Source: Cyanophora paradoxa CCMP329 (lineage: Eukaryota; Plantae; Glaucophyta). Taken from it: a stretch of DNA of 64,000 nt. The stretch's first letter is position 1. Every line of letters starts with the position of its first letter. A program made the position numbers and the translations under genes. Positions 15,744 to 64,000 of the stretch are shown one piece after another. Below the pieces are notes generated by a model. The model made no database searches. It saw nothing but the letters and a program-made list of their open reading frames with translations, and was not told the DNA's origin. Location: NCBI GenBank assembly GCA_004431415.1, contig QPMI01000495.1, forward strand, positions 186,001 to 250,000, given 5' to 3'.

Positions 15744-15779
<36 letters not shown>

Positions 15780-36674: not shown

Positions 36675-36794
36675 TCAATACCTAACGCTAAAAACTCCAA
36701 CTCAAATGAATTATCGATACCGTTCATATCAACAAGATCACCGTAATAATCGCAAAACTCTACGGTTAACTCATTAATCACTAAATTACGATCG

Positions 36795-37129
36795 ATCTGG
36801 TAGACCTTGATTGGTGGGTCGACCGTCCCAGATCAAACGAAGTTTGGAGCCAGTCTTCTTCGGGACCACGGACAAGGAGCACACAATGTTCACCTCGTGC
36901 TGTTGGACTTCACGAATGGCCCCGGTGCGCAAGAGTTTCTGAATTTCCGTCCGCACAAAATCCCTGTGATCCTCGGCTGCAGACTTGTGATTACGCCGAT
37001 GCTCCGGTGGCAGATTGCGGGCCCCAGTCAGCGGGAAACCGTCACGTATCCATGACAGCACCACATAGTTGGCACCAATCTCCTTCCACTGGGACCAGGC
37101 CTCACGGATGCAGGACGCCACAAAAGAAC
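36795..37129 (-). pseudogene. DIRS-type reverse transcriptase, N-terminal fragment
   Basis: WKEIGANYVVLSWIRDGFPL...FVRTEIQKLLRTGAIREV...CSLSVVPKKTGSKLRLIWDGRPTNQGL; clearly homologous to the RT at 63376-64000. Confidence 0.85.
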
Positions 37130-37313
37130 CTGGTGGCTAAAAGTCACAAGCGCACGGGAAGTGGGCTTGAGGCCTTAAATTGTCGCCACATCTTATCAAC
37201 GACACGAGCTGACAGGCTGAGCTGCAGTTGAGTCTGGCTCAAGCTGCAGCTGGAGCTGAGTTGGAGCTGGAGCTGGTACGCTGGAGGGCGGCTGTGACAC
37301 GCGAACGTGAGGA

Positions 37314-37442
37314 ATCTTCACTGCTTCGCGCGAAAGAAGACTGAAGGTTGTACCCCTAACAATCATTATATAGAATCAAGGCTGCTTACGGAGTGGCAGG
37401 CATACAAAGTCATATGCTACGCGTTCGCTCGCATATTCAGTA
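37314..37442 (-). repeat. Internal A repeat (A2) of element 1; with adjacent sequence forms a long hairpin at 37371-37472
   Basis: Identical to 39398-39526. Stems CAAGGCTGCTT/AAGCAGCCTTG, GTGGCAGGCATAC/GTATGCCTGCCAC and ATATGC/GCATAT. Confidence 0.9.
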
Positions 37443-38263
37443 GTATGCCTGCCACAAGCAGCCTTGCTTCTAAGCAATTCTAAGCCAAGTCTGATCATGA
37501 AGTTTTTAATAGTGAGCGTGTCACAGGTACGAATTTGTCACAACACCTGACGTTCACCTCCACGGTGGATGCGCGAAGTTCTTGAATGAAGGCACATCAC
37601 AGCATGCACAGCACACACATATGGACTCATGCAAGTACACAACTTGTTCTCTTGAATGCTTCAAAACTTGTCCAGCATGCACACCTCTGGATGAATGCGC
37701 CAACCTGCGGAACAGAATAGAAAATTGGGAGACACACCTGGATACCAAGAGATGATTTCCTCCACACCTGCGATACCAAATGATTAGATCTGAGCACCCA
37801 GCGCGCGATAGCGACACACGAGATGGCCGTTGCTGGCCAGGAACTCGGCAACTCGACCGCAGCCTGATGTGACCTGGGACGAGAAGAGGTCAGGCTGTTG
37901 GGGATTGGCTGGGGCTCGCACCAGGTTGGAGTCATCCAGGTGGCACTTATGGCCCACAAAGTTGTGATGCTCAAAGCTTATGCAAAATTCGTAGTTACAA
38001 GGCCTTGTAGACTATGGCAAATTTGAAACGATCACAAGGTCATGCACATTGCAATTGCCAAGCTAGTGTTTACCACAGACCCATCACCACAAATGCAATG
38101 CAAGCTCAAACACACATAAGAAAGCCCAGATTTATTCCTTCATGGCACACACACAGCACAGCACAGCTACGAGCACATGCACATGCCAAGTCTGGGGCCA
38201 CACGAAAACGAAAAAACCTAGCACTCTACAGCTGCGCCCGAAAGGCTGGGCACAGGAAGCCGC

Positions 38264-39399
38264 CTACTTCTTCTCGCGCCAATCCGGGCGCGGCGGGTTG
38301 GTGCAATCCTTCACATGGTGGCCGTGCTGGTTGCACCTAAAGCAAGCGCCGCCGTTCCGCTGGGCGGTGGGCGCCTGCTCGCGTTCGACGCGCTGCCGCT
38401 GCGGGGGCCGATAGCTAGACGGCTGGCGCTCAGCTGGTGCATACGAATTACCGGCGCCGACGCCAGCCACACGAAGCGCGTACGCCATCGACGCGGTCTG
38501 CGCGCGGTGCTCCTCCGGCACAGCTGCGAGCGCCTCGGCTGTCTTATCGCCGCCTTTGTCGCGGATATCTATCTTCTTCTTAAGCTCCTCGAGCTGCTTC
38601 AAAGACGCTTTGAGGGTTGCTGCACAGGCGACACACGAGAGGAGCCCCTTGAGCTGGAAACGCAGCTGTATCAGCTGGAACGCAAACTCCCGAAGCCAGG
38701 TATTCTTAAGCTGCATTGCTTCATGCTGTTCGCGCTGCTGCTCCTGAGCGATTTGATGCTGGTGCTCACGGATGGACTCTACCCCTCGGTCTATGCCTTG
38801 CTGAATCTGCTTCTTAATGTACTCATTAAGCTCACCGGCAGGGCTGTTGTGGCGTTGACGACGGGAACCGGGCCGCGGCGGTGCCGAGTGTGCCGGCTGG
38901 GTCCTGGCTGGTCGGGAACCGGCACCTCGAGATTCGGGAACATCTGTGCGGCAAGAGCTTCCTCTCGTGTGGCTGCACCGCCGAACTGCTCACGACGCTG
39001 CACGCCGGCAATCACATCCTCCTCGTCCTCGGAAAATGGCTCCGGATCCGGAACGCCGTCACTGGTGCGGTTTTCGACTGCTGGGGCGGCTGGCGCCTTG
39101 CGCTTGTTGCTGGTTGACTGACGGCCACTTGGCGTTGGAGTAGGCGCCGAACCGTTGTCCTCGCCGCCGGAGTCCGCCGCCTCGGTCACACGCGTGGAAC
39201 GGCGAGCTCGTGGCTGGGCGGATGCGGTCGGCCGCGGACGGGCTGTCTTGCGGGAGCCCGTTGCGGAAGACTTGCCCTTCTTGTTCGACCCCGCCTCCGC
39301 GCAGGCCGCCAAGAGGCTGAAAACGACGACGACGAGAACAAGTGTGACCACCAGAGGGGCCCAGCTAGGGCCCCTCCCACGACGAGCCACGCGACACAT
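38264..39399 (-). CDS. gag: Gag-like ORF1 of element 1 (N-terminal signal peptide, coiled coil, CCHC zinc knuckle; one frameshift at ~38835)
   Basis: MCRVARRGRGPSWAPLVVTLVLVVVVFSLLAACAEA; CFRCNQHGHHVKDC. Confidence 0.75.
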
Positions 39400-39526
39400 C
39401 TTCACTGCTTCGCGCGAAAGAAGACTGAAGGTTGTACCCCTAACAATCATTATATAGAATCAAGGCTGCTTACGGAGTGGCAGGCATACAAAGTCATATG
39501 CTACGCGTTCGCTCGCATATTCAGTA
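39398..39526 (-). repeat. Terminal A repeat (A1) of element 1
   Basis: Starts TACTGAATATGCGAG at the element boundary and ends inside the gag ATG. Confidence 0.9.
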
Positions 39527-40514
39527 TTATCGATACCGTTCATATCAACAAGATCACCGTAATAATCGCAAAACTCTACGGTTAACTCATTAATCACTAA
39601 ATTACGATCGTTTATTTTTATGTATTCTCCATGCTCTCCGCTATGGTATACATACTTTCCGATGTCCTGACTTAATTGTAAACGCAATATTGCGCCTTGA
39701 GTCAGTGTGACACACTAGTACTGCAGCTGACAGACTAGTGACACACTGACAGTACACATGCTCTGTACTTCTACTAAGTAGTAAGTACTAGTACGGTAGT
39801 AGTTGTACCGCCGCTACCGCGGTCCGCCGGCGCCACCGTCCGCGGGCCGGGGAGTCCGGCGGGGACCGGGCCGGGGTAACTCACTAAGTTAGCTAAGTTA
39901 GCTTCCGCCTAATATAAGCAGCCTAATTTTAAAGCACGGCCTTTTTAACTTCACATTACTAAGTTACCGTTAGTGCGCATTCTCTCGAGTTTTTTAGAAA
40001 TGGTTTTTCGGTTTTTCTGACTCTTTCGAGTTGGAGTTTGCTCTACAATTGCTTGGAGTCTTTGACAGCAATCCCGGAGCTAACTTGGAGTTTGATAGAC
40101 AAACCATTCGCAAGTAAGAATCGCAACAACTTGCAGTTGGATGAACTTGGATCGACCCCTTTCGAATTCCGAAGTTTGTAAGTTGATGCAATGATAGCTT
40201 ATAATCGTTGAACGTTTAAGGTGGAGCGCCAAGTTCTTTTTGGCAAGTTGCCAGTGGGAGGAACTTGGAGAAGTTGGAGGCAACTTCATCGATATCAGGC
40301 AAGTTGGACTCTCAGAGTCTGTTGCCAGACTGTTGGATGCTTCATGATCAGCTTTAAGGTTATAATTAACTTGGAGCACATCATGGCATGGGCCATGGCC
40401 AATATTGGAGCAAGCCTTGTCATGATCATTGATGCCTTGAACTTCCAAACTTGGAGGATATCGATGGAGGCCGAAATCCGGATCCCGAAGTCCGGATCAT
40501 CGACCGGATACCGT

Positions 40515-40745
40515 ATAGTTGTTATACGAGGAACGTAGTATAACGTACTTCGGACAGCGTGAATAATGTATATTGTTACATAAATTTCGCACTCTTTGTT
40601 GCTTCGCAACAAGTACTTCTTGGGTACTTGTTGCACCTGCAACAAGTCCTACGAGCTTCCTAAGAGCTGCAGCAGTGAGCTATCGCTGCAGCTGCTGCAG
40701 CTTCTCTTCAGAGTTGCTTGATAGCAGCTTCGCTTCTTGCTCCCA
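40515..40745 (+). repeat. Terminal A repeat (A1) of element 2
   Basis: Near-identical to 63026-63256 (two 1-nt indels); ends at the A of the gag ATG. Confidence 0.9.
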
Positions 40746-41806
40746 TGGCAGCCCTAGCGCGCCCCCGCGGGCGCCTCCAGCTCTCCCGTTTCGTCCTAAT
40801 TGTGTGTCTCCTTGCGCTCCTCGTTTGCCCGGTCGCAAATGGCGCCCGGGGTGCGAAGAGAGCCAAAACCGCGACTCCCTCTCCCAATCCGCCCGATCCG
40901 ACTGTGGCGCCCTCTGCTGGCCCCAGTAGCCCACCCCCTGTTCCTCCAACGCCCACCCCTGAGGCGCCGGCCCCGGAGCCCGGCCCGCCAGTTATCACTC
41001 CTTCAGGCTCGAATATTTGCATCGGAACGCATGGCCCAACAGTGCCAACCCCATCCCAGCAGATTGCAGACCAAACCGTAGAGGCGTTCAATCAGCGTTT
41101 CGCAGCCATTGAACATTACCTCGGCGAAGTGATTGCAGCTCGTACCATAGGTACTGCCACCGCCAATCCAGCCCCGATTCCAACTCCGCCCATTTCGTCG
41201 GTCCCACTTGTCGATTTGACATCGAACAATGGCGGTGAAGGATCATCTTCGGGCAACACTGCGCGTGAGCGTGCTGCACGTACACGTGAGCCCCTTACTG
41301 AGCGCGAACGCCAACGTTTCCACTATAATATTACCCGTTGGAATAACCCTCTAAACAAAGAATTTGCTTTGGACACTCTCGATAATATAGCGTTAGCCGA
41401 GGCCCGTGATTATTCTGCTCTTTATATCGCACTTAGAGACCAACTCAAAAAGATCCAACGCATCAATCAGCTAGGCCTTGATCGTGCTCTTAGACTGCAA
41501 AATGTAAACCAGGCTACTGATGATTTTCAGGAGCGCCAACTTTTGTTAACTGAACAAATGTATCAGCAGCAGTTGCAGCAGTTTACGCAGAATACTGTCA
41601 CAGGCATGCCGTATGGTCGCTCACAGAATTTCGCTGCTCGCCCTCCCGGCCCTCGTCTGGCGGCCTCTGGCCCTACTCGCCCACGGGCTTGCTATCATTG
41701 TCACGATCCATCCCATATGCGTAATGTCTGTCCTGCTTTCCGTGCAGCTTGCCAGAACTGCCCTCCTGGCACTCGCCCGACTCCTCTGCCGACTCCAAAC
41801 TCGTAA
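40745..41806 (+). CDS. gag: Gag-like ORF1 of element 2 (signal peptide, Pro-rich linker, CCHC zinc knuckle)
   Basis: MAALARPRGRLQLSRFVLIVCLLALLVCPVANGA; CYHCHDPSHMRNVC; intact reading frame. Confidence 0.8.
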   Translation: MAALARPRGRLQLSRFVLIVCLLALLVCPVANGARGAKRAKTATPSPNPPDPTVAPSAGPSSPPPVPPTPTPEAPAPEPGPPVITPSGSNICIGTHGPTVPTPSQQIADQTVEAFNQRFAAIEHYLGEVIAARTIGTATANPAPIPTPPISSVPLVDLTSNNGGEGSSSGNTARERAARTREPLTERERQRFHYNITRWNNPLNKEFALDTLDNIALAEARDYSALYIALRDQLKKIQRINQLGLDRALRLQNVNQATDDFQERQLLLTEQMYQQQLQQFTQNTVTGMPYGRSQNFAARPPGPRLAASGPTRPRACYHCHDPSHMRNVCPAFRAACQNCPPGTRPTPLPTPNS

Positions 41807-42054
41807 ATTTATTTCTTTTCACATCGATCCATCAGAATATCGATATTCATGAGTTTTTCGCTACTTATGTACGAGCAGTGTTTTGACGCATGAGGGCATA
41901 TCTTGATAGCAGAACCTGTGAACGTACTTGTGTTTTCTTGTGAGTAATTGATGATGGATTCGAAAATCGCTGCAATTTCTTGATGCCCCAAAATCGCCAC
42001 TGGCGTGCATATGCATGGATGCAATTCGCGAAATCGCCTTTTTATGGCGTACAT

Positions 42055-42352
42055 TGTTGCCACTGTAGTTTAGCTTGCATTCAGGCCTTCGAGCCACTCT
42101 GTAGTATAGTGCTAGTGCGCGGGCTGAGGCTGTAGCACTTCTCAATAGCTCATAGACTTGCCGGTACCTCCGCAGTACCTAGGACTCCTCCGGCGTTGCC
42201 GGTTCGTAGACAGATTCTGTACCCCCCCCTACGTTGTTCGATACCCCCTCAGTCCTGTAAGAAGCCCAGCTGCGACCCGTTCGTGCTACGCCTGCGCGCC
42301 TGCTGCCTAGGCATGGGGCTGGGATCACATTGGGACACTAACTAAGCCTATT
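42055..42352 (+). repeat. 5' LTR (lacks the last ~10 nt of the 3' LTR)
   Basis: TGTTGCCACTG...AAGCCTATT; matches 62275 onward apart from 1-nt indels. Confidence 0.95.
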
Positions 42353-42984
42353 TGACCCTCGCCGGGACGATCGCTGGCCTGACGGCGGTTCGACAACGAC
42401 CCGCCGCCACCTGGCGTGAACCCGCGGGAGGAGAGTGCGTCATCCTCGACGGACGTGCTAGACTACACGACCGCGTGCCCGCTGGACGCGCCGACCGGCC
42501 GGAGCACGACCTAACTGACGGAGCTGACTTCCTTGTCCCTTCGCCAAACTTGTCGCGCGGCGTGCCTTGCTCTACGCAGGACACGTGCGGGAACGAACAC
42601 TCGCTGCAGGCAGTGACCCGTGTCTTGCGGCTCGCTGCCCCAGTGCAGGAGAGAGTGAGGCGAAATCACTCGACCTTTACGTGTAGCGACCCGTGACTTG
42701 CGGCTCGTTACGCCTAAAGGGCAACGTGTATCGGTGCGCGATCTGCACTGCACGTTGCTGTCGCTGTCGTGTCGTACTCTCGTCGCGATCGTCGTGCTCG
42801 TGCACGCGCGCTGAGAGCTCCGCAGCTGTTGACAACACTGTCAGCAGCTCGGCCAACGACACGCAGTGACTGCTCGACTGCCCTCGCCCTCGTAGTCGGC
42901 CACACGGCGGCCGCGATCGCGACGCAGTACGTTACGGACACACCGGCATACGCCGCGTACGTGACACGCAGGACGTAAACGAGC

Positions 42985-43650
42985 AACCTGTACGGATCGC
43001 ACCCGCTCACGTAGCGGCTGAAATCTGTACGTCGATCTTCAGAGCACCCCGCTCAGAAGGTCACCGTCAACCCCGTCGTCAACTTGTACGGATCGCACCC
43101 GCTCACGTAGCGGCTGAAATCTGTACGTCGATCTTCAGAGCACCCCGCTCAGAAGATCACCGTCAACCCCGTCGTCAACTTGTACGGATCGCACCCGCTC
43201 ACGTAGCGGCTGAAATCTGTACGTCGATCTTCCGAGCACCCCGCTCAGAAGGCCACCGTCAACCCCCTCGTCAACTTGTACGGATCGCACCCGCTCACGT
43301 AGCGGCTGAGATCTGTGCGTCGTCGATCTTCAGAGCACCTCAGCTCAGAAGATCATCAACCCCGTCATCTATTTTTACAGATCACACCCGCTCACGTAGC
43401 GGCTGAGATCTGTGCGTCGTCGATCTTCAGAGCACCTCAGCTCAGAAGATCATCCACCCCGTCATCTATTTTTACAGATCACACCCGCTCACGTAGCGGC
43501 TGAGATCTGTGCGTCGTCGATCTTCAGAGCACCCCGCTCAGAAGATCATCCTCGACTTCGTCGCCGGTCTACGGAGCACCTCAGCTCTCAGGACCATCAC
43601 CACCGTACATCTTACTTCAGATCACACCCGCTCACGCAGCGGCTGCACTC
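42985..43650 (+). repeat. 96-bp tandem repeat (~6-7 copies) in the Gypsy 5' leader
   Basis: Units start at 42985, 43081, 43177 and 43273, then diverge; core GATCGCACCCGCTCACGTAGCGGCTGA. Confidence 0.92.
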
Positions 43651-43697
43651 CGTTCACCGACGGTCTTCGAAATCACTCAGAGACCATCAACGTCAAC

Positions 43698-48600: not shown

Positions 48601-51600
48601 ATCCGACGCCTGTGGGCCCGGACGGCCCCTTGGACCGGAGAGTAACAACTCGAGCCGAGGAGACGTTCAATGCAATCATCATGGAAGCGCTCGCTTGGTG
48701 GCCCAAGAGCCAGCTCGCCTGCAAGCATGGCTATGCCAATGTTTACGACCGCTTCATCAACCTTAACATGGAGCCGTTCGACGTACGTGCGTACAGAGTC
48801 CACGCCAACACAGAATGGTCCAGCACGCGACCCAACCAGCGGTTCAACTACGGGACCCTACGCACGGCAACTCGAACTCCAACCAGGACCGGGACACGCG
48901 CAGCGCACCCCCGACACCGGCTCACGGCCCATTGGTCAGCCTCACGACGCAACCACAGCAGCACTGGCCTGAGGAAGCTCGCAATCCCCCGCGGCTGTTG
49001 AAGCCAACGACGGTCATCTCGTACCAGTCTCACGAGGCCGGAGTGGTAGACAGCCGTGGCTGCACCATTCCTTACTTCGGCATCGGCGAGCACGGATCCG
49101 CCTACGAGTATTTCAATCCAATCCGAGTCACAGCCATCTTGCGCCGAATTTACGACCCGGACGAGCAGCGGAAGTATAAGGAAGCCATGAAGATCATCCC
49201 TGAGTCATATGACTTCATTGCAGCCCAGCTGGAGACCAGTACAACCTGGCCCCCCTCATGGACATACCCGACTGACGACGACAAGCGTAACTTTATCGAT
49301 CTTATGTACGAGCGGGAACGACGCCCGAGCCGAGCGCCTCAACGACCAGCTGGAACCAAACCCCGAACGGCGCCTGGATCCGTGGATCTGACGGCGAGCG
49401 TGAACACGGCGTACGACGCCGATTACGCCTTGGGTGAGGGCAAAGGTCCTTACATGGCGGCGGCGCTTACTGGTTACGCTCGAGCACGGGGACGCGAAGC
49501 GAACAGGACCGCCTCGAGCGCTACGCGGAAATACAAGCCACGACAAGTCCGGGTACAGACCATCGCGAACAAGATGGAAGATACACCACCGACGTCGTCA
49601 TCTGAGACCCCGGAACGGACACCTTCACCCCCGTTCAGGGCGACCTCGGCCGACCCCCAAGCCCCAACTCTGGACGATCCCGGGAGTGGTGTCCTCAGCC
49701 CCAGCGACAGCGTGGCCCTTGGTTATGGCACTACGAATCCCTCCAGTCTCATTACCGTCGCCCCGGCCACGGCCGGCGCGCCGCAAACTGAGACGAATGC
49801 TACCAACGTAACAATCAACCCGAGCCCTGCATCTCCGACCCTTACGACGCCCCTGGAAGCCGCCCCGGCCACGGCTGGCGTGGCTCAACCCGGCGTTATA
49901 GCTTCAGAGCAAGCGACTCCGGACATGACCATAACTGTCAGGGAGCAGACTTTGACACTGCCAACTGACAACGAATCGACCACGACCCCCGCAACTACCG
50001 CCCCGGCCACGGCCGGCGAGGTAGACAGGTCGAACGTTGAGCCCACGGACACGCCCAGCATGACAAACCCCGCCGATCACAGCCCTACGGCAAGGCCGGA
50101 TGACTTCATCGTTGAGTCCGAAAGCCCTCCAGGACCCGACTGGATTGAATGCCCAGGGGATTGCCGTCCCCGACTGTGGGCTCGCCCACACTCGCGCGCG
50201 TGGATATATGCACGTGAATACTGGCGATCCTGGAACGAGGAGGAGCCAACGGCAGAGGAAGATGGCTCGGGACCAATTCACATTTCCCGGACTTACCCTA
50301 CTGTCACTGAGGATCCCCAGCGTTACATCCAAGTCGGCGACATTCCCGTCCCGATTCCGGAACCTGAACCGCCACTTCCAGTCCCGCCGGAGACCGGCGC
50401 AATCGTGAGAACCACACACTTGGGCGAGGTCACTGCTGCAGTTTCACAGCGCCTCGGAGACTGTGGGGTCATACCAAGCACAATGCCCGGCTACGCAGAG
50501 GCAGCGGCTGCGGTCGACAATCCCAACCTGTTTGCAACCTATCGCAAGTACACGCCATGGAATGCAAGTACGGACCCGTCCAAGACCGGCCTCTACCTCA
50601 CAAACATTTCCACGCTGCCTGACGGACTCACGGAGCTGAACCCGGCTAACCGGCACGTCCTCGACAGACTCGTCACGTACGTCGATGTCGAGGAGCAATC
50701 AGCGATTTTGCTCAAACATACCGCCCATCTCCGCGCTGTCGCTTATGCGATCATGAGAATTGCGGGCACAGCCGACACTACGGATAGCTTGGAAGAGACG
50801 CTGCGTCACGCATCTGTCCTCGAGCTGCTGGGCCTTGATGCACAACAAGCAATAACCCTGACGACTTCACGGCAAGGAATATTGCCTTGGCTCTTCGACG
50901 TCATGATCTCGTACGGCCGAAGCATGCGGGCACAATTCCCTACTTACTTCGAACCGCACGGGGACTACTATGCGCCTTTCCCCACTCTCGCCGACGCGCT
51001 GACGGTCCGCATGACGGCACTGGAACGCTTAATCCTCGAGTCGCACCTGCCGCCGCCCTTCGACGACGAATTCGCGCCTTACCCCACGGCGACACCTCCA
51101 GCGCTCGATCGAGACATCGCCCTCGAGATGCGGGTGACAGCCCTGGCCAACGCAATTCACATTGCAGCGGCTGGAGCACGCATCTACTTCCACTCGAAGC
51201 CTCGGGAGTTGGAACGGCATCACTCATGGCGCAGCCCTTGGCTTCGCTGTTCGGATCCGTTCTCGGCAAAGCCAAATAGGCTGCTGTGGCCGACAAGCCC
51301 AGACTTCTACTTCACAATGGGAGTCGAAATGGTGGAGTACATCACGCGCGTGCTCAACCTGCCCTTCGGAGGCCACTTCGCGAATAGCCCCAACAGCTGG
51401 CTGGCTACCGTCGACCGGTACCTTGACCGGACACAGACGCCCCCGGAACAGGGGACCTTGGACGTTCCACGGAAGCCCTTCGAGCTCCACGGTGTATTAC
51501 TCGACGAGTACAAACTAGCGGTGATTGAATGTAACGAGCGACGCCTCGACTACTCCGAAGACCCGCTTTCTCCACTCTGGAGAGGTCTTCAGGCGTTCCG

Positions 51601-54600
51601 GACCGGTGCCGAGAACTCCGGCAACGTGTTCGTGACCCATCTCTCCGCGAGGACAGCCTTAGGGCGTGCCCGCGAGCTCGGCGACGTAGCAGCATTCCGA
51701 CAGGCCCTGCGGCTCCATCTGGACCGTTACCCGGAGAGAGTACATGAGCGCGTCGGTGCTCGTAGCTACCCGAGCAGCTTCGAGCTCAGCCGCGTGGAAC
51801 CGGGACCTGACCTGCAACTGTCACTGGTTGAAGGCTACCCTGAGGGCCCGTACACCATCCGTATTCAACATCAGGAGGCGGTACTCCTCTCCAACCCCAC
51901 GTTGTGGCACGCCACTGTTCTCGACGCATTGTATTGGGCGTTGAAGCGTAAATACAACGGGGACAAATGGACGGATGCGGAGGATTGGCAGGCTCAGTGC
52001 CTGGCATACGGAATGACAAACCGCCTTCGACTGATCGACTCCCAGCCGAACACCCTAGTCCGGCTCTCCCTCGTCCGGGCGATCATGTTCGGGGCCGACA
52101 AGATTCTCGGAATTTTCCAGTACTGGAACAAGTCGAAGGAGAACCTACTTGCGGATCTTACACCCTGCGTACCGAACGATTACGTGAATCCAAGCACGGC
52201 AACCATCGACATTATGCAGGCGTACAACGTCCCATTTCCCCCGATACGTCAGAGGATCACGGAGTACGGCCTCAATTGGGACACCCGCTTCCTCCTGCGT
52301 TGGGCAGAACTGACCACGCTCCGAATCCACGATTCCATGTTCTTTACGGCCGACGACGAGACCACACTGCGGAGTCACCCCCTCATGTTCTCAGGACGGA
52401 AACGACCGCCCCCGGCACCGGTGCAGCAACCACGTAGCACAACTTCAGGCTCAACTGCTAAACGCGTGGGCCTGAAAAAGGGCCGCAAGACAGTAATATC
52501 GGAAGACGAGGCTGGTGACGATTGGTTTTACGAAACTGTCGACCTCAGCCGGAACGCCCGGGCCATATTCGGTACCCGATATTACTACAAGTTCTTCGGT
52601 GCCGACATCATCGAGAACGGCTACGTTACCGACAAGTTCGAACGCGTCGGATGGTGGGGCGACCCCAGGAACGCATCCACCGCAAGCAATCATACTCAAG
52701 TGCGGGGACTCGACGACAGCGTCGATACTCAGTGGGCATTTGAGGCGGGGCACTCGGGCCTCCAGCACGGGAGGGGACAACACAACGACTTCCGCTTGTT
52801 CACGCTGTCTTACCACAAGGATCTGCCGGCACTCGAACGTCTGGAGGACCCCACTATCCCCGAGGATAGTACGGTGCAACTCTACGACGTGACACGCTCA
52901 GACACGCGCAACGAAGTATACACGATCAACAAACAGCCGCTCGCATTCCGAGGCGTCGAATTCTTTCTCAGTACTCTCAGCTCCGCGATGGCCGAGAACA
53001 TGAGATACACTCCGTGGTCTGCCGTCCTCGTGGCAGAAATGTGCAGTGCCTCGCAACCTCGGTCCTCGTTCACGCGTGACTTGACGGCATTGGAGGAGTA
53101 CGTGAATACGAAGCCTGAATGGGAACACCCACTGGCAGAGAGCCAAATTCAGTACTTCATGCACGGCGACACGAACATGGACAAGTTCATGCGGAAGCTT
53201 CCAGAGTTCAGACCGATCCACGCGCTTAACCAGCTTCGTTGGCGCGGAGCACTACAGGCGCTCGACGGCGTGGTACGCCATCGGGCACGCAATCGTTCCA
53301 ACCCGTACCTGCACGGGGTGCAGACCGTGACAGATGACGGCAATACCCGCAAGAACCGTTGCGAGATCAAGTTTACCACCTTGACAATCGCTCCCGCCAA
53401 TGAGCACAACCCGTTGAATGAGCTCGGTAACTACCTCACAGCGTTCCGAAGCCCACTCGAGCGGCCTCAGGGACATGAAATGGCTCCCCCGCTTGGCAAC
53501 GGCGGACCCCATGCTGGCACGTTCCACGAGTTCAACTCCCCGACGATACTGAGCGACACCCTGGAAGTCTTCGCCAACGGCGGCCCGCGAATTTACACAA
53601 AGACGCGGACCAGGGACACCCAGGCTGTCGTTCACGTGTTCGATGCCAACAACCGTGACACTTGGCTCCAAATCGCCCGTTCGAACAGGCCACAACGGCC
53701 CGCGGACCAGCCTGCATACTTCGACTACAATCGCATACCAATTCTGCTTGAGGAGACGATCCTACCCGGCGGCGTCTGGAAGACCATCGAGAGGCCTACT
53801 AGGCCGACGGAGGGTGCATTCATCCACGTTATCCCCTTCAAGCCGGAAGTACATCACTGGGTCCACCACTTCGCACATCACGTAGCAGCTTCAATCCGTT
53901 TGTACACGGCGTTCCCGTCGAAACAGATGCCAATCCACGACGGCCTGCTGGAGATTCTCGACGAATACGTGACTTCGAATGCGAGCCTACTACACTTCCG
54001 TGTCGACGACGACGGCAACATGACCGTGTCTCAGGAACTGCAAGACTGGTACGCCCGGGATTTTGGCACGGCAACACCACCACCCGGCGCCATGTTTGCA
54101 ACGGCCTTCATGGCACTACTAGTCACGGCGATTACAACGCAACTCGCGGCAGTTGTCCGCCACGGGGCCCTCGGCAATGCCGGGCGCGCCTCCACAACAG
54201 CCAAGGAGACATGGCAACGCTACGAAGATCGCCAGTCGCAGCATGCACACTTTCCCGCTGCCTTCGACCTCCCTGTCAACGTCATCGAGATGTTTGGACA
54301 CGACGGAACCATGGTCGGCAACAGGGGCATGGACAACCTCGGCATGGGCGTGAGCCAATACACGTTCAACAGGAACGAGTTCGAACGGTCCTGGCGTCAT
54401 TACGAACAGCACGTGGGTCCGGAGGTACTCCTACAGTACAATGAGATCCACGCGTCCGAGGAAGATTCGATTCCCGAATTGTTTCTCCTTGACTACGGCG
54501 CAATACTGTTCTCCGACGACCTCGTGGAGCATCGTACGCGCTGGATAACGCTGGCTTACAACGCTTCCGGCACGTCACGGGACGACCGCATCACCATGAC

Positions 54601-56250
54601 AGCTGAACTGGCACCCCCCTTGCGGTACAGCGGAGGTCTCACAGAAGCCGACGGAGCAAATCCTAGCCGTTTCGGGCCCCACCTCTACATCGGTGACGAC
54701 GAGGACGGAGCTCCTCCCGGACCATTTGAGGGCGTCGGGTTGTCCATCAACCCGCTGCGCGGCGCTCTACAAGTCGACCCCCGATACCCGCGGACGTACC
54801 TGTACGACCAGGCGACGGGACGATGGAGCAGCCCAGGCTGGTACGACGGCAGAACGCGGCCGCCGCGAATCCAAGTCTAGCCGGTACGAAGCCGAGGCCG
54901 AAGCGCATGAAGGAGACAGACCTCCCGAACGACGGCGAGAAGGAGCACAAATGGGCCCTGTGGATCACACCGCGAACAATTGACGGTGCTCGGGTCGGCG
55001 GCAAGACGCCCGTCGTGATTGACAGGGGTGACACGGCTCGGGCACTTCGCCTTTGTCGCTTCGACGTCGCACCCGAGTTCAAGCCCCGTCTGCCCCAAAC
55101 AGGAGTTCACCGCGTTCGCTTCCGGCGCGTCGCCCGAACACCACCGGTAGCGGGCAGCGACAGCGACACCACAAGCACGACTTCTCGAACTTCGGCACTA
55201 GCTCCACGCGGAAGTAAAGGAGCCCTCCCGCCTACCTTCTACTTCCGTGCACACTACCGTGACCTCTCCCAAACGCCTGTGGACACCTCGTACACGGAGT
55301 ACAGCTGGGAACGCTTCGCGGCACACGGTCAGTCTCACGAGTCCATCCCCGTACTCTGGCCAGACCTCTGGGACGAAGACGGAACGAACTTCAGGACTGA
55401 ATACGATTTGTATGACTGGAGCGCATTCCGAACACCGCATCAGCTCAATGCTGACGCCCTCGTGTCATTGGCTGAGGATCTGCGAGCACGGCCGCCTGAC
55501 CTCTCCAACTCGGCGGGAGCCTCCTTGGACGTCGTGCGCACACGCGCCCTGTTCACTCGCATGGCGTTCATCATGAACACTTTGGGGTTCACCGCGTGGG
55601 ACGCGGTCAAACACGCCTCGCTCGTCTCCATCCATCGGGACCGCGCTCGATTTTACTTCAACTCGATCCTGCAGGGCGACACCCGCCTACCTCACCAGTG
55701 GAAGACGCTGGTCAGCTACTTGCGCGAGGGCCTCAGTCGCCACGGCCATCATTACGCGGAATACGACACGCTCGTCGACTTCGATCCCAACCCTGACTCG
55801 GATGAGAGCATCGCTTACATCTGGTTTGGCCGGAAGACCAGCGTACACGCCCAATACCTCACAACATCCCCGAGACGAGGACTCGGATTCAGCCGGCAGG
55901 ACCACAGCACTCGTCCTAGCAGCGGCCCGGTGCCGTCCAACAGCACCCGCCTGATTCCAAACCGACCTCGAACCTTCGCGGCGGTACATGTTTCAACAGA
56001 GCACATGAATCGGTCTCCAAGGTGGAGAAGACTGCCCGCATCCGGGTTGCCCGCCTCCCACCTGACGCCATCTCATCGTCACGACCTTTGACGACGCCAG
56101 TGGAACGGAGCTACCAGACAGCACTTCGTGTCCGCACGGCAAGAATGCTCGGTTGGCTGGGTGACATCGTGTCTCCTAACGACATACCTACAGCCGAGGA
56201 TACGGCAATTGGACGTCGAATCGCTCAGCTGACAAAACCCGACCGGACAA
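45600..56250 (+). CDS. ~3,500-aa uncharacterised polyprotein segment between Gag and protease
   Basis: Overlapping same-strand ORFs 45748-48036, 47955-49001, 48815-54880 (2021 aa), 54823-56091 and 56022-56807, linkable by single frameshifts; no introns; no domain recognised. Confidence 0.75.
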
Positions 56251-59200
56251 TGAAGCAACGGATTGCAGATGGTCGCATCTGCGTGTCGGTGCGACTCGGG
56301 TCCTATGCACCAGGACGGAAAGTCGGACCGTCCGTCAAAACTCTGGCGTTGGTGGATACGGGCGCCGCAGCTGACGTGATTGACGGAGACCTCGCTGCGC
56401 GCATCGAGGGCCTCCGTTACAGCCGCGCGCCGCCAGTACAACTGACCGGATTTGGCGACGACATGACGGCTTACGCTCGCATCGCCTACATGGCGGTCAT
56501 GATTGGTCCCGTACGGTCGGTGAGAGAGGTCCTAGTGGTGGACAAGGGCCTCATGGGGTCTACTCAAATGCTCCTTGGATTGGCGACGCTCATTGCCATG
56601 AACGCTCACATCTCGCTCGACCCGACTAACTGGGGAATGACGATCACGGCACCTGACGCCGACAATGGCGAACGATACCATGTCCCTTTTTGCTTGCGGA
56701 CCAGACCGACGGGGGCGTTCTGGTCCGCCTCGCCCAAGATGTCACCGTCGGCCAGGCGAAGCTCTCGTTCGCTGTTACGTCTCGACGGGCCCTCAAGACG
56801 CGACTGACGATGCGCCGGAGATGCTCCTCACGCCGCCGCCGCACATTGTTGGAGACGACGACGGAGCCGACGACCCCGGTGAAGGAGATGAACCGCGTCA
56901 TCTTGTCCCTCACCAAATACATCGACGTCCTCGAGGAGGAGCTTTCCTCGCTCAGGTCTGCAATCCACAACGCCGACCCGTCCGCTTGAAAGCGGGGACC
57001 GTCATCGCGGAGGCGGAATTCGGCAAGTGGCCCGAGAGCGAGTTCCGACCCCACGACGACGTCCATCGATACCCGACGGGTACTTACAAGACCTGGTCGA
57101 GTGACGAGAAGCGCAAGTTCCCCATCTCTTCCATTGCCGTCCAAATCCTCTCCAATGTGCAACCCGTGATTGTACCTGGGCGATCACAGCCTCGACGTTA
57201 CGTATCCCGAGTGCACGAACAGTACCCCTCTGTTTTTGCACGGCCACCACAACCCCAGACCGAGGACCAAGGCCTAGACCCCGCTCACAGAGCGGCGCCG
57301 ACGCCCCCAGTCCTCACTTCCGAAGCTCAAACCCAACTCTCACGCTTCGTGACTGCGTTCGTCACGCGATACACCCGAGAATCACGCGCGATTCTGACGC
57401 CATCGGAGATCAACGAGTTGTGCAAGATCTTCGAACCCCACTTTGCCGATACCTATCGGCAAGGCAGGCCCCTCCTCAGCCCTGTATGCATCACGTTTGC
57501 CCCGACCACGCCGTCGGCGCAACCGCGTTGCATCACCATCTCCTCCGCTTCACCCGCCGAACCCCACGCAATGGAACCTCCTTCGAGCGCCAACGCCACC
57601 CCCCCACCACAGACGGAGGAGGAGGTCCGACAACTCGTCGACGATCTCATGCAGCCGTCGAAAGACGACAACGATGTGACGGAGGAGGAGCGTGACCAAC
57701 TACGTAGCCTCTTCACACGGATGGCGCACTGCTTCGCGCAGCGCATCAACCCCAAAGAGCTACTGAAGTACCGTCACAGCATCCGACTCCTCCCCGGCGT
57801 ACCTACGAAGCATCTGCCTTTGTACAGCGTGCCCCGGCGCCTCTCTCCCCCTGCTGAGAAGGCGGCCAAAGCCGAAATCGAACGACTGCTGCAAGATGGT
57901 CTGATCGAACCCTCCCAAGCTGGATACGGTTCCCCAGTGGTACTGGCGCCCAAGAAGGACGGGACAATGAGATTTTGCGTCGATTACCGCAAGCTGAATT
58001 CGCTCACGGAGCGCGACGTCTTTCCTCTCCCGAGAATAGACGATCAACTCGAACGCCTGCAAGGCGCGACGTACTTCTCGACGTGTGACGCCACCTCCGG
58101 GTTCTGGCAGCTTGAACTCGACGAAGAATCCAGGCCTCTGACGACGTTTATCGTGCCCTGGGGCATGTACCAATGGCGAGTTACCCCGTTTGGTATTACG
58201 AACGGACCAGCGGCGTTCTGTCGAGCAGTGACATCGATCTTGGGCAATCTGCTGTCGACAAGCGTTGTCGCTTACGTTGATGACCTCACGGTCCACTCCC
58301 CGACGGCCTCACAACACCTTGTCGACCTTGAGGCTTTCTTCGCCGCGATCGAGCGAGGAAACCTCAAGCTCAAACCGTCCAAATGCCGTTTCATGGTGAA
58401 AGAGATCGACCTACTCGGACACCGTGTCAGCCGCAACGGCGTGAAGATGGACAAGACCAAGATGGCCCTCATCGAGAAGACCCAGGAAAAAGATCTCGGA
58501 ACTGTCGAGTCCATTCGCAGCTTCATCGGCATGACTGGATTCTACAGACGGTTCATTCGCAACTACGCGAAGCGGGAACTGCCCCTACGCGACCTAGTCA
58601 CGCGAGCAACACGAGCTGACTCGCTGACGGTCACCTGGGACGATGACGCTCGACGGGCGCTGGACGACCTCAAGGCCGCCATCATGGAGGATGTCGCACT
58701 ACTCTTACCCGACTTTGCCAAACCATTCGTCATCCACACGGACTGGAGCAAGCGCGCCATGGGGCGGTCCTCATGCAGGCTGACGACTGCGGACGAGAGC
58801 GTCCCATCGCTTTCATCAGCAGGACCCTGACTGCGACGGAGCGCAAGTTTCAAAGTCCGACGGAAGGGGAATGCATCGCGTACTCTGGGCGGTGAAAGTG
58901 TGGAGCCATTACTTCGAGTGCGGGCACCCATTTACAGTCCGGACCGATCACTCGGCACTCCAATGGTTGAAGTCACAGGACGTGACGAACAACAAGGCGC
59001 TCTGTCGAGCGGCGCTGGACTTCAGGGCTACAACTACACCATCGAGTACCGCGCGGGGCGCACCAACGTTGTTGCAGACTTCGAGTCGCGTCTGGAACCG
59101 TCACACGACCTCTTCCTCCCAGGAGCGGGTGACGGCTCAGACCTCACGACTGACATCCCCGACGGAGCTCGAGGATTCGGTGTACCCCGCCGAGGCGATC

Positions 59201-61880
59201 TCGACGACCCAACCCAGCTCTTCGCGGTAGCCCCCACGGACACGCTCGACGGGCCAGCATGGGCGTTGGCGCCGGGAGCGAAGCGGCGTCGCCAAGCGCC
59301 CCCTGTAGACGAGCATCGACCCGTTGGCCAACGGCTCGGTCCCTCCTCTACAGCACCCCAGCCGCCGACGTCACCCCCCAGTTCGCGACGGCGAATTCGG
59401 CCGACGGCGACAGTGACACCGGTGACGAGGACGAGAGTGCACAGCCCCTCCGCCCCGACGCACTCGCACTGAGCCTTCGCTACCACCCCACGCGGACGGA
59501 GCTCAGTCTCAGGGACAAGAGGGCTGCCCAGCCCCGTGCCCCCTTTCCCGAAGCGACCACGTGGACGCCCGCGGAAACTCCCCCCTCCTCCCCCTCTAAA
59601 CGACTCGTACTTGCGAGCTTTGGAATCCGAACGAGATCGGAAACGCCTCCAGGCGCAAGCTGGCCTTCTACCTCGTCCGTCGGCAACGGAATCCCGCTCC
59701 ACCTCCGCGCGACCCGCTCACCGAGCGGCTTGCACGTGGTGAGCGAGACAAGGCGAAGACGACAACCAAGCAGCAACGCCGCGAGTCAGAGGAGCAGTAC
59801 AAGCAGGCCCTCGATAACCGCCGCGAGCAGCTGTCAGACCAGGCCAAGAGTCGTCACGATGCCAACCGCCGCTCGTGCAACCGACCGGAACCGCCGACCA
59901 AGTCGACGCGACGCGAAGCGAGGAACGCCGACTGGAAGCGTGGAAGCAGTCAGCAGACACCCCTCAGCGGGCCGCAGACCTGCCCCCTCGCCTCCCAGGG
60001 AGGAGATCTCGATCCTCTCGCCACTCCATTGCGCCCCCCGCCGTTCTCGACGTCGCCGACGAAGCTGAGTACGAGGCGTACTTACAGCAGCAACGCGACT
60101 CTGGAATTCCTCAGCCTACTCCGATGAGCACCGACGCTGTCGCGCCGCTGGACAAGTCTCCTATTGGCCTGCCGGAGGAGACCGCAACAAGCCCGCAGTC
60201 ATCCATCTACCTGACGACGTGGTGGTGGAAGATACGTGGCTGCAGGGACCCCGACCACTGGTCGACGTCCCCGTACCACCGTCTGTCGCCAAACTCGCTG
60301 TCGACGGCGCCGCCGTCGTTGCAGCACAGGCGGAGGACCCGCTCTGTCAACTGCTGCGAGCCTTCATCTGCAAGGGCGAGAACAACGCCATGTGCCTTCG
60401 GCACCGGCGAGCGGCGACGGTAGAAACAGAGATTGTGCAGCAATGCATTCACTGCGAGTCTGCGAGACGACGGTTCGCTCGTGAAGCCGAGGGCTACACG
60501 ATCGATGAGGAGGGCACTGTCCTTCGGCTACCATTCCTGCCTACCATGCGAGCTCAAATCCTCGTTCCCCGTCGTGGCGACGCACCTTCCTCGAGGTGTA
60601 TCACGACGGGTGGCACACCGCGGCGCTCCCATTGTGGCGCGGCGTATCGCGTCTCGTTTCTGGTGGCCGGGGATGACGAACGCTGTTCACCGCTTCGTGA
60701 AAACGTGCCGACACTGCCAGTTCGCGAAGGCGCAACGCCGCCCGAGAGTCCAACACATGGTGCTGGAATCCGCGCATCCTGGGGACTTGAGGCAGGTCGA
60801 CCTGTTCCCCATGGAACCTCACAGGCGCGGGGTCCACCTCTTCACCGGCGTGATAGTCGACGTCGACGCCTTCACCAAGTTCCCGGAGATTATCATGTAC
60901 ACCGCGGCTGACGGCCAGGCCCTGGAGATGGCGGCACAGATCATCTTCGCGCTAACGGTGCTCCAAGCGTTACCTCTCTGACAACGGGACGGTCCTCGAC
61001 GAAGTCTCTTTGGGGAACCTTCTGGCGAGCCAAGGGTACGCGCATGATCTACACTGGGATCAACCACCAATCTACCAACGTGGCGCTGAGCGTCTGGGCG
61101 GCATCTACAAGCGATTGGTGTACGCGATGTGCGACGAGAACCACGAGCCTCGCGCTCACTGGCCCTTCATCATTACAAAGTTCTCTTTGCCTGAGGACAA
61201 CAATCCATGCGGCGACTGGGTTCTCGCCGGCAGTCTTACACTACGGGCGCGAACTGCTCTACCCGATGAGCTTCGACTCGATCTGGTACTGCGGGAACCA
61301 AACGAAGAGTCGATCTCTCTGTACGAGTACGCGCTGTCGCGGCGAGGGCCGCTAAGGATCGGATCACTGCGGTGGCCGAGCACCGGCGTCTTTACAACGA
61401 GAAGTTGCTCCGTTACGGGACTGGCCGCGAGCCTACCTATGTCTTCCAGCCTGGCGACAAGGTGTTGGTGTGGATTATCACTGCCAAGACTAGCGCGCGA
61501 ATCAAGGGGCCGAGGAATGGCTGGACGGGTCCCTACGTGGTGCAGGAGATCCATTCCCGAGGCCTTCTGTACACTGTACGCGGGAGCCATCGTCGAACAT
61601 GCATCGATCCCAGTCGATCCTTGTTCACGTTGACCTCATGATCCCCTTTACGATCGGCCGCCGACGTGGCAGAGCCTCGACGTCAGGGCCGACCGCCTCG
61701 AGCCGCTCCCCCTCCGCCGCGAGCGATCCCGACGCCATTGATGGAGCTGTACCCCTTGACGACGAGGTCGAAGAGGACGAGGTCGTGGTACCCCCGAACC
61801 TGTCGGCGAGGCCGTCGTTGTAGATGACTGTGATGTTGACTCTGAGGATGGAGATGCTGACGCCACCTCGGCGTGAGTCG
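56250..61880 (+). CDS. pol: Gypsy Pol: aspartic protease, RT, RNase H, integrase (several frameshifts)
   Basis: ALVDTGA (~56355); PKKDGTMRFCVDYRKLN, DATSGFWQ, PFGITNGPA, YVDD (~58273); FVIHTDWS, FTVRTDHSALQWL; WWPGM..CRHC, QVDL, LSDNG, GGAER, TGFSPA, WTGPY. Confidence 0.93.
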
Positions 61881-62260
61881 ATTGCCACACGTGACGCGGC
61901 ACGGCTGCCTCACGCTGATCAGTCGACGTTAACGTTGGATCCTTTCTGAGCGATGACAAATTGGATGGTGATTTGCCCCCGTCTCTGAGGCGGTGCACCC
62001 TGCACGCGCGCTCCCCTGGAATGTGTGGCCCCTGGGTTTCCCTGCTACCATTCTGAGACGAGGCGAGTACCGGATCATGCCGACCGATGTCGCGGGCCGA
62101 GGGCCATTGCTCGCGCTAAACTAAAACTTTTCCTTTGCGCAGCGAGCGGCTGGGTAGCGGCTGTACACCGCTGCTTGGTTTGCTCTGTCAAGGCTGCAGC
62201 GGGCCTCGGGCCCGTAAGTCTGTCGGACGGCCGCCTGGTGTGGCCGCGAGGACGCGACCT

Positions 62261-62274
62261 AGGGACAAGAGGGC
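62261..62274 (+). other. Polypurine tract
   Basis: AGGGACAAGAGGGC immediately before the 3' LTR. Confidence 0.8.
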
Positions 62275-62579
62275 TGTTGCCACTGTAGTTTAGCTTGCAT
62301 TCAGGCCTTCGAGCCACTCTGTAGTATAGTGCTAGTGCGCGGGCTGAGGCTGTAGCACTTCTCAATAGCTCATAGACTTGCCGGTACCTCCGCAGTACCT
62401 AGGACTCCTCCGCGTTGCCGGTTCGTAGACAGATTCTGTACCCCCCCTACGTTGTTCGATACCCCTCAGTCCTGTAAGAAGCCCAGCTGCGACCCGTTCG
62501 TGCTACGCCTGCGCGCCTGCTGCCTAGCATGGGGCTGGGATCACATTGGGACACTAACTAAGCCTATTGAACATATTCA
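62275..62579 (+). repeat. 3' LTR
   Basis: TGTTGCC...GAACATATTCA followed by the TSD TACAT. Confidence 0.95.
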
Positions 62580-63025
62580 TACATGTCGCAGCTCTGCCCT
62601 TGTGGCATCTGCATGTCTTGTTTTTTGCTTTGAAAATCGCTATGGCGTGCACTTACATCGACATTATTGATTGCAAATTGTCAGGACAGCTCTGCCTCGC
62701 GTGGCATTGTTGCTGTATTTCTTTCAGTGCACGGCACTAGTGCATACTCCTCGCCGGAGATGGAGATTCGGTCGCCATTTTCTTTCCCTTGCGCAGTTCA
62801 AGCATCTGGAGTTCAGGCACGCCTCCCCCATAAATCGCTCGTGCACTGACTGGCGACCGAACGCATCGATGGCATTATACATACGCATTTTACATATATG
62901 TGTGCTTCTGTGTGCCGTTAGAGCCTTGCACTCGTCTGCAGGCTCTCGGCCTTCGCTCTTTTGCTCTTCATGGCAATTGTACAAGTAGTACCTCAATTGC
63001 AATATACGAAATGAGCGCTGTCCGA

Positions 63026-63256
63026 ATAGTTGTTATACGAGGAACGTAGTATAACGTACTTCGGACAGCGTGAATAATGTATAATTGTTACATAAATTTC
63101 GCACTCTTTGTTGCTTCGCAACAAGTACTTCTTGGGTACTTGTTGCACCTGCAACAAGTCCTACGAGCTTCCTAAGAGCTGCAGCAGTGAGCTATCGCTG
63201 CAGCTGCTGCAGCTTCTCTTCAGATTGCTTGATAGCAGCTTCGCTTCTTGCTCCCA
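63026..63256 (+). repeat. Internal A repeat (A2) of element 2; with upstream sequence forms a hairpin at ~63000-63087
   Basis: Stems CGCTGTCCGAA/TTCGGACAGCG and GTTATAC/GTATAAC; apex GAGGAACGTA. Confidence 0.9.
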
Positions 63257-63375
63257 CCCAACCCTCCCTAATATATGGATGCTGTTCTGCTGTCTATATA
63301 ATTCCCTCCCTTGCGTGCGGCCTCGAGCTGCATTCTCGTGCACTATTAATTGCGTGCTGTTGTTTTTTCTGTCAG

Positions 63376-64000
63376 GTTTTACTGCTCGCTGTCTCGGAAG
63401 TGCGGATGCCTTGGCGGCATGGCGTGCAATCGGAACAAGTGATTACATCCTTTCATGGCTTCAGAACGGCTACCCTCTTGCTGGCGTCGAGCATCTGCTC
63501 CTAGTGTACATTACAATGCTGGTCAATCTCAGCGCCCTCGTGAGAGTACTTTCATTCGGGCAGAAATTCAGAAGCTGCTCGGTACCGGCGCTATTCGGGT
63601 GGCCCCCAAGCCCCCGAAAATTGTTTGCTCGCTATTTACGGTTCCAAAGAAGACTGGTGATAAGCTCAGACTGATTTGGGATGGCCGCCCAACAAATCGA
63701 GGTCTTCCTCCTGTCCCTTTTCGCTATGAAAATATGCGCGAGGTCATCGCCTTGCTGCGACCTGGCTGGTTTATGTTTACTATCGACCTCGAGTCGGGAT
63801 ATCATCATGTACCGGTAGACCCGCAATATTTCTCGTACCTGGGCTTCCAGTACGATAGTACTTTCTTCGAATACACCGTTTTACCCTTCGGGCTCTCACA
63901 TGCCCCATATGCATTCACCAAGATCATACGTCAGGTCATTAAATTTCTCCGCGCACACGGTATTACCGTGGTATCGTATGTAGATGATTTCTGGTTTGCG
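63376..64000 (+). CDS. DIRS-type reverse transcriptase (partial; frameshift at ~63500)
   Basis: VPKKTGDKLRLIWDGRPTN...TIDLESGYHHV...VLPFGLSHAPYAFTK...SYVDDF. Confidence 0.92.

Follow-up and report, generated by a model that had tools for sequence, protein, structure and literature searches.

RESULTS

Two retroelements with the same gene order

A 64,000-nt stretch of contig QPMI01000495.1 from Cyanophora paradoxa CCMP329 (positions 186,001 to 250,000, called the window at its full length) contains two retroelements, element 1 on the minus strand and element 2 on the plus strand. Their component parts are summarized in Table 1. Comparison of the window with itself, together with reading of the letters, gives the order A - gag - spacer - A - reverse transcriptase (RT) in both cases. 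In element 1 the repeat match is between 37314-37446 and 39398-39530 (99.2% over 133 nt, E = 4e-62), and in element 2 between 40511-40745 and 63022-63256 (98.7% over 236 nt, E = 4e-113). The A copies of one element are thus ~99% identical, while those of different elements are unrelated; only GAG(C)GAACG(CG)TA and a few short runs can be aligned. A sequence-only reading of the window had described dissimilar repeats in a common layout, and the self-comparison confirms this.

The same reading placed the end of the outer A within the gag start codon, and this is what is found. In element 1, where A is 128-129 nt long, the end reads GAAGAT/G in the outer copy A1 and GAAGAT/T in the inner copy A2 (the slash marks the boundary), with the ATG at 39399-39397. 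The A of element 2 ends CTCCCA/TGG in A1 and CTCCCA/CCC in A2, and the gag ATG is at 40745. The second A does lie between gag and RT as proposed, since the N-terminus of a DIRS-type RT follows 100-190 nt after the inner A in both elements, reading ...VPKKTG.KLRLIWDGRPTN... in each. The long repeats of both elements are direct, not inverted. No inverted pair of at least 40 nt was found by self-comparison within 35000-64000, the 3' terminus of element 2 lying beyond the window.

Both copies are degraded and dead. The RT of element 1 ends after ~110 codons at 36795. Element 2 had been taken to extend from 40515 to beyond 64000. It is indeed DIRS-like and starts at 40511, but the segment 42055-62568 is a nested long terminal repeat (LTR) retrotransposon. 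Without this insertion the spacer measures ~645 nt, and the DIRS-like part within the window is only ~3 kb. The 3' end of element 2 is beyond 64000, and a target duplication there would be outside the window.

The encoded proteins and their relatives

Frameshifted open reading frames (ORFs) were searched as separate pieces, and no sequences were merged or repaired. The RT query was the 168-aa piece of element 2 alone, the frameshifted N-terminal piece being kept separate. A search against representatives returned more than 21,000 relatives, the best of them with 37-46% identity and lengths of 630-720 aa. None of the representatives exceeded 46% identity except for a 125-aa Cyanophora paradoxa protein fragment, the only named close match, which is 66% identical over 83 residues. 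Taken with the 72-78% G+C of the left half of the window, this match makes a glaucophyte-like host likely but not certain. The top 150 matches were taken as RT-RNase H(-Dam) proteins. The domain scan covered ten of these, and found RVT_1 with a Dam-like methyltransferase region in six, with RNase H as well in several. The combination of RVT_1, RNase H and Dam typifies the pol of DIRS and PAT elements, and the window RT is therefore of this type. The assignment to the DIRS order made from the letters alone agrees with these best matches.

Closer relatives were found in public assemblies. A word-based search identified P0153, 77% identical to the RT piece, on a 3.3-kb ENA metagenome contig (L004). 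This starts inside an A homologue, passes through the same non-coding stretch into pol (RT and RNase H), and continues into an ORF with Phage_integrase and SAM-like N-terminal domains. Using its recombinase fragment as the query led to L005 (88% identical), L006/L007 (73%) and L008 (88%), with the same gene order. A tyrosine recombinase (YR; Phage_integrase E = 1e-9 to 1.7e-9) is therefore the gene directly after pol in these four relatives, whose RT is 77-82% identical, and this is where the sequence-only reading expected it, downstream of the window edge. The domain scan of the relatives revealed the YR and no DDE integrase, and no HUH nuclease was found. RNase H was found in L004, L005, L006 and L008. 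L005 has an unbroken pol of 654 aa and a recombinase of 334 aa with LLRRSE, HSLRRGG and GRWH...Y motifs. Its pol could be aligned with the Dam-bearing pol P0006 over 596 residues that include the Dam segment. At the starts of L004, L005 and L008 the 3' end of an A homologue stands directly before pol. A metagenome scan with the L005 pol gave only relatives of 31-32% identity. The distant relatives L002 and L003 have gag and pol adjacent or split by unique sequence, with no internal repeat, and are uninformative on the layout.

For gag a single relative was found, P0001, encoded on a 1.6-kb Logan contig (L001). It is 44% identical by BLASTP and 51% in the alignment. L001 starts 30 nt inside an A-like sequence, ...CTGCTCCCA, and conserved spacer blocks follow. 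All three gag proteins have a C-terminal CCHC knuckle; that of element 1 matches zf-CCHC with E = 2.4e-4, and the sequences are CYHCHDPSHMRNVC in element 2 and CFHCHDPSHMRNVC in P0001. All three likewise begin with a basic stretch, followed by 17-20 hydrophobic residues and a small-residue motif. These N-termini (40745-40850; 39399-39290 on the minus strand; residues 1-33 of P0001) resemble a signal peptide or membrane anchor, an uncommon feature in a Gag protein.

The proposed B repeat and the position of the internal junction

The 3' ends of the relatives were compared with each other and with the window. L005, L006 and L008 share a common 3'-terminal block, the remainder of their 3' untranslated regions (UTRs) being divergent, and all three contigs stop exactly 30 nt after the start of CTTCATGGC. 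At the other side, the A homologue ends 30 nt into L001 and L008, and 32 nt into L005. Logan assemblies use k = 31, so that a contig stops k-1 = 30 nt into a repeat. Given this value, the contig ends place the start of the repeat at CTTCATGGC. Similarity between the relatives' 3' ends and the window begins at the corresponding point, 62966. The segment 62966-62981 (CTTCATGGCAATTGTA) is identical to L006 in 16 of 16 nt and to L008 over 13 nt, and the bases before it differ. The short B repeat starts CTTCATG in the relatives, and the same motif occurs 56-61 nt before the internal A in both window elements. The B segment of element 2 is 56 nt long and reaches the first base of A2; in element 1 CTTCATG is 61 nt before A2. 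Because the B-like segment before A2 matches the relatives' 3' ends, the internal B/A junction is placed between gag and pol, in accord with the sequence-only reading.

We therefore have good reason to think, with fairly high confidence, that both window elements belong to one PAT-like lineage of the DIRS order with the organization A1 - gag - spacer - B1 - A2 - pol (RT, RNase H, methyltransferase-like domain) - YR - 3'UTR - B2. The A1/A2 pairs, the zinc-knuckle gag and the DIRS-type RT are all present within the window. The B1...B2 part of the layout is inferred across elements. This is a known kind of mobile element in a new layout, with its internal junction between gag and pol, and we file it within the PAT-like group. 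We found no earlier description of an internal junction in this position, known layouts being compared through the secondary account in PMC4157794.

Two short sequences near the junction are strongly conserved. Between A2 and pol, the 17-nt block TGCGTGCGGCCTCGAGC occurs unchanged in element 2, L004 (212-228) and L008, and matches in 16 of 17 nt in L005; it is better kept than the flanking coding sequence. The 44 nt directly before B1 (62923-62966) are 93% identical to L001:1535-1578, despite the gag proteins being only 44-51% identical, and are a candidate for a second strongly conserved cis element. A viral_contigs scan with the conserved 21-nt block gave no match.

A predicted hairpin spans the junction

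The junctions were folded as single strands, and z scores for the B1/A2 junction were compared with the context in which flanking sequence abuts A1. The element 1 hairpin (37472-37371) has a folding free energy (ΔG) of -36.5 kcal/mol and z = -7.8, and the flank/A1 context has z = +0.3. For element 2 (63007-63101) ΔG = -22.6 kcal/mol and z = -4.2, with a 64-nt core at -17.2 kcal/mol and z = -6.2; the flank/A1 context has z = -1.6. A strong hairpin is therefore predicted only at the contact of B with A. In element 2, TCGGACAGCG within A has as its pairing partner the final 6-7 nt of B together with the initial 4 nt of A, and additional pairs lie outside these. Both elements have a hairpin of 95-100 nt, with arms that are unrelated between them and a common apex motif. 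It had been noted from the letters that the A repeats share only a hairpin apex. That is correct but incomplete, because the hairpin extends across the B1/A2 junction. Unlike arms around a common apex is the pattern of a conserved structure, in a set of two sequences that is too small for statistics. Rfam gave only sub-threshold matches of miRNA-precursor shape with both junction regions, and these merely mirror the hairpins.

The complementarity between the end of B and the segment of A extends over 30-50 nt. The end of B appears as an inverted copy of a segment of A, and from the predicted folding a linear single strand could form pairs between its ends. In DIRS-1 a sequence complementary to both ends is required to complete retrotransposition (PMC7192593). 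By analogy, the hairpin might play the part of the DIRS-1 internal complementary region. The junction palindrome was also considered as a classical recombinase core site, and rejected; the B/A boundary is offset from the apex by 15-27 nt in one direction and is not in a central spacer.

The published model for DIRS and split-repeat elements suggests how such a junction might be used. The element would be transcribed from A1 and then reverse-transcribed. Its ends would be rebuilt and joined into a circle, which the tyrosine recombinase would insert. The 3' half of B, as the inverted complement of a segment inside A, would allow the ends of the single-stranded copy to pair. The B2/A1 junction of the circle would correspond to the internal B1/A2 copy, placed here between gag and pol and not near the 3' end.

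Expression of pol and the recombinase

In four of five cases (L004, L005, L008 and element 1) the stretch from the closest preceding stop to the conserved N-terminus of pol contains no ATG in frame. The ATG at 63279 was considered as the pol start of element 2. It is in frame, but is absent from every relative and was rejected. In L005 the intact pol frame is shut by a TAA 21 nt before an acceptor-like CAG. The YR ORF has no ATG in three of four elements (L004, L005 and L008), and no A precedes it. Both pol (5/5) and YR (4/4) begin at a pyrimidine tract and CAG resembling a splice acceptor, always leaving two bases of a split codon; examples are at 63373-63376, 37132-37129 (minus strand), and L005:127-130 and 2148-2151. 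Donor-like GG/GT sites occur ~100 nt into gag, just past the hydrophobic N-terminus, at 40851 in element 2, at 39289 in element 1, and in L001.

The missing start codons together with acceptor motifs of the same phase are more readily explained by splicing from a single upstream exon than by a second promoter. Perhaps, therefore, the RNAs for pol and YR arise by splicing to a shared 5' exon and borrow the start codon and first ~35 codons of gag, a proposal that we make tentatively from these motifs. If so, A2 would be a replication signal and not a second promoter, which we suggest with less confidence. Whatever the mechanism, the missing ATG and the acceptor-like sites speak against A2 as a plain second gag leader or promoter for pol. 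The proposal of the sequence-only reading that each gene is preceded by the same leader and promoter is therefore not upheld; a conserved ATG is lacking after A2, and YR has no preceding A.

Genuine GT..AG introns were also seen inside RT, at 691-743 of L004 and ~650-722 of L008, and count in favour of the splicing proposal. Their positions differ, and there are none in L005 or element 2. The junctions read IDLE/SGYHH and PFG/LSHAP, and this is presence/absence variation within a retrotransposon family.

Direct split repeats with a circle-junction copy between gag and pol, a junction palindrome of 100 nt serving as an end-joining splint, and pol and recombinase expressed by env-like alternative splicing from one 5' exon that provides a start codon and a hydrophobic N-terminal peptide common to gag, pol and YR might all be combined in one element. 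As a whole this combination is possible but doubtful. If it were true, the lineage would merge features normally split between DIRS-1 and PAT.

Evaluation of the assignment and of alternative explanations

A number of observations count against the PAT-like layout and the proposed mode of expression. RNase H, the methyltransferase-like region and the tyrosine recombinase are found in close relatives and not in the window, and are probably parts of the lineage on that basis. B1 and B2 occur together in no single element, element 1 being truncated, element 2 running past the window edge and the contigs of the relatives being broken at the repeats. Equating a contig end with the start of a repeat assumes that Logan assemblies use k = 31. 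Pfam Dam has no direct match to the L005-type pol, even at E <= 5, and at the catalytic position the NPPF present in P0006 reads PDPS in the L005 pol (residues ~560-570); the methyltransferase-like domain may be inactive in this lineage. The donor is a sequence match only, and its phase is right in two of the three gags (element 2 and L001) and off by one in the degenerate element 1. Lastly, element 1 has an 85-nt flanking duplication and lacks its 3' end, unlike the product expected of recombinase integration.

Three other explanations of the repeats were weighed. If A2 were a working second promoter and leader, gag and pol would each be transcribed from their own A. There are TATA-like motifs in A (TCTATATAA in element 1 and TACATAAAT in element 2), A1 ends exactly at the gag ATG, and an AT-rich patch and the 17-nt conserved block follow A2 in all the relatives. 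Yet the leader part of the element 2 A contains no ATG, and no conserved ATG follows A2, with none in frame in L004, L005, L008 or element 1. The closed pol frame of L005, and a YR lacking both an A in front and an ATG, are equally hard to accommodate. A second promoter is thus rather unlikely.

The arrangement might instead be a head-to-tail co-integrate of two recombinase-mobilized units with the same ends, A-gag-spacer-B and A-pol-YR-3'UTR-B. Formally this is the same description, with B1/A2 as a circle junction, and linkage is not visible in the relatives, whose contigs break at A and B. However, the gag unit is directly upstream of the pol unit in two elements whose A sequences are unrelated, with matching A copies in each. 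The two units would be mutually dependent, one having no gag and the other no pol, and the lack of start codons in pol and YR fits the need for an upstream exon. We regard a co-integrate as improbable. That gag is an ORF flanked by direct repeats could also suggest a small LTR element with gag alone, bounded by A1 and A2 as its LTRs and inserted upstream of an unrelated RT gene. But two divergent elements show this arrangement, L004, L005 and L008 each have an A homologue right next to pol, and the B upstream of A2 matches the relatives' 3' ends. Moreover A does not have TG..CA ends, and there is no target duplication around A-gag-A and no short one at the A boundaries. This explanation can be given almost no weight. 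The PAT-like assignment with an internal B1/A2 junction is the reading that we prefer.

Comparison with known tyrosine-recombinase elements

Tyrosine-recombinase retrotransposons are the least understood retrotransposon order. To our knowledge experimental tests have been limited to DIRS-1, and what the internal repeat copy does in split-repeat elements is so far described by a model.

Elements with split direct repeats and a methyltransferase region are classed as PAT, and the Pat1-like forms among them have a zinc finger in Gag (PMC4157794). The internal repeats lie between the methyltransferase and YR in nematode Pat1 and kangaroo, or just upstream of the 3' repeat in echinoderm Pat1 (PMC4157794). 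Ngaro and VIPER lack the methyltransferase region, and have B1-A2 downstream of YR (PMC4157794, PMC6681497). A further account states that 'other configurations exist', listing none (PMC8969392).

The window lineage most resembles the Pat1-like elements, such as PAT of Panagrellus redivivus, in its zinc-finger gag, pol with RT and RNase H, co-oriented YR, and probable split direct repeats and methyltransferase-like region (PMC4157794). Its internal repeats are between gag and RT, however, which is neither of the Pat1 positions described in PMC4157794. It also differs in the long junction hairpin, the unconserved methyltransferase catalytic motif and the apparently glaucophyte-like algal host. 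Kangaroo of Volvox carteri and TOC3 likewise have algal hosts, and they have the split direct repeats and methyltransferase-bearing pol that are probable in the window lineage. But in kangaroo YR is inverted, gag has no zinc finger and the internal repeats are between the methyltransferase and YR, and TOC3 has no zinc finger (PMC4157794), whereas the window lineage has a co-oriented YR, a CCHC gag and a gag-pol junction.

DIRS-1 of Dictyostelium and DIRS1-like elements share the YR and a pol with RT and RNase H, and probably with a methyltransferase region. The end-complementary sequence of DIRS-1, proposed to rebuild and join the termini, is essential (PMC7192593), and in the window lineage a segment of A has its complement at the end of B. 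The terminal repeats of DIRS-1 are long and inverted, and its internal complementary region of 88 nt is a separate segment close to the 3' end. In contrast, the long repeats of the window lineage are direct, and A itself includes the complementary segment. Ngaro and VIPER also have a tyrosine recombinase, and split direct repeats such as the window lineage probably has, but the closest RT matches of the window lineage carry Dam-like domains, and its junction is upstream of pol. LTR retrotransposons are different again. Here A flanks gag only, the relatives have YR and no integrase, and there is no short duplication at the A boundaries.

These comparisons leave the classification of retroelements unchanged. 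They add a third position for the junction copy, between gag and pol, and suggest that this position can vary freely while the B/A junction as such is kept. As a structure that brings the two ends together, the covarying junction hairpin offers a testable candidate. Start-less pol and YR point to expression by splicing, an uncommon mode among retrotransposons. The PAT-like host range gains a glaucophyte-like host, provided that the host assignment is correct.

Features of the window and sequence context

Table 1. Features of elements 1 and 2 and of adjoining sequence, in window coordinates. A slash marks a boundary within a sequence.
Feature	Positions	Strand	Description	Basis
Element 1	36795-39525	-	3'-truncated degenerate copy, A1-gag-spacer-B1-A2-first ~110 pol codons	repeats and ORFs
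Element 1 A1	39398-39525	-	5' terminal repeat, 128 nt; contains TCTATATAA; last bases are the AT of the gag ATG	reading
Element 1 gag	38264-39399	-	hydrophobic N-terminus, coiled-coil-like middle, C-terminal CCHC knuckle; frameshift near 38860	ORFs, Pfam
Element 1 B1 (inferred)	37442-37502	-	61 nt, starts CTTCATG; last ~31 nt pair with A nt ~37-75	start by analogy with element 2 and relatives
Element 1 A2	37314-37441	-	internal copy, 128 nt, 99% identical to A1	self-comparison
Element 1 hairpin	37371-37472	-	over the B1/A2 junction	folding
Element 1 pol fragment	36795-37129	-	RT N-terminus, 49% identical to L005; starts ccaccag/GT, cut at 36795	alignment
Host segment, first copy	36710-36794		85 nt, exact copy of 39526-39610; the pair flanks element 1	self-comparison
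Host segment, second copy	39526-39610		second copy of the 85-nt segment	self-comparison
Element 2 A1	40511-40745	+	5' terminal repeat, 235 nt; final base is the A of the gag ATG	self-comparison, reading
Element 2 gag	40745-41806	+	353 aa, intact; hydrophobic N-terminus and CCHC; donor-like cggg/GTGCGA at 40851	ORF, alignment
Element 2 spacer, part 1	41807-42054	+		reading
Nested LTR retrotransposon	42055-62568	+	foreign to the DIRS-like element; LTRs 42055-42352 and 62275-62568; ACAT on each side	repeats, Pfam
Element 2 spacer, part 2	62569-62965	+	blocks 62724-62772 (84%) and 62923-62966 (93%) conserved with L001	alignment
Element 2 B1	62966-63021	+	56 nt; begins CTTCATGGCAATTGTA, identical to the L006 3'-terminal segment	alignment
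Element 2 A2	63022-63256	+	internal copy, 98.7% identical to A1	self-comparison
Element 2 hairpin	63007-63101	+	over the B1/A2 junction	folding
Non-coding block	63312-63328	+	TGCGTGCGGCCTCGAGC, 17 nt, between A2 and pol	comparison with L004, L005 and L008
Element 2 pol	63376-64000	+	RT up to YVDD at the window edge; starts tctgtcag/GT; frameshift near 63495; 76-82% identical to L005	alignment

The duplicated host sequence flanking element 1 is AT-rich, and a host ORF runs through the reconstructed empty site. At 85 nt it is far beyond any usual length of a target-site duplication. The 5' end of the element is exact, though everything after RT codon ~110 is missing. Our guess as to its origin, and only that, is that an incomplete DNA copy was captured at a staggered break. 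The AT-rich host ORFs around element 1 have no Pfam match.

The LTR retrotransposon nested in the gag-A2 spacer of element 2 is 20.5 kb long, which is unusually large for such an element. Its LTRs are 298 nt and 98.7% identical. Pfam identifies a CCHC gag, a pol with RVT_1 and RT_RNaseH_2, and Integrase_H2C2. The element also contains a 97-nt tandem array at 42984-43668, and several very large ORFs with no Pfam match, for example that at 48815-54880 (2021 aa).

The G+C content changes sharply within the window, from 72-78% at 1-28000 to 47-62% at ~28000-64000. All three retroelements lie on the lower-GC side, as do ORFs without a Pfam match and long tandem repeats at 28999-31358, whose units are ~300 and ~800 nt. 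This side could be a transposon island or DNA of foreign origin. In the GC-rich part there is a 250-nt imperfect palindrome at 15728-15977 that is 68% self-complementary.

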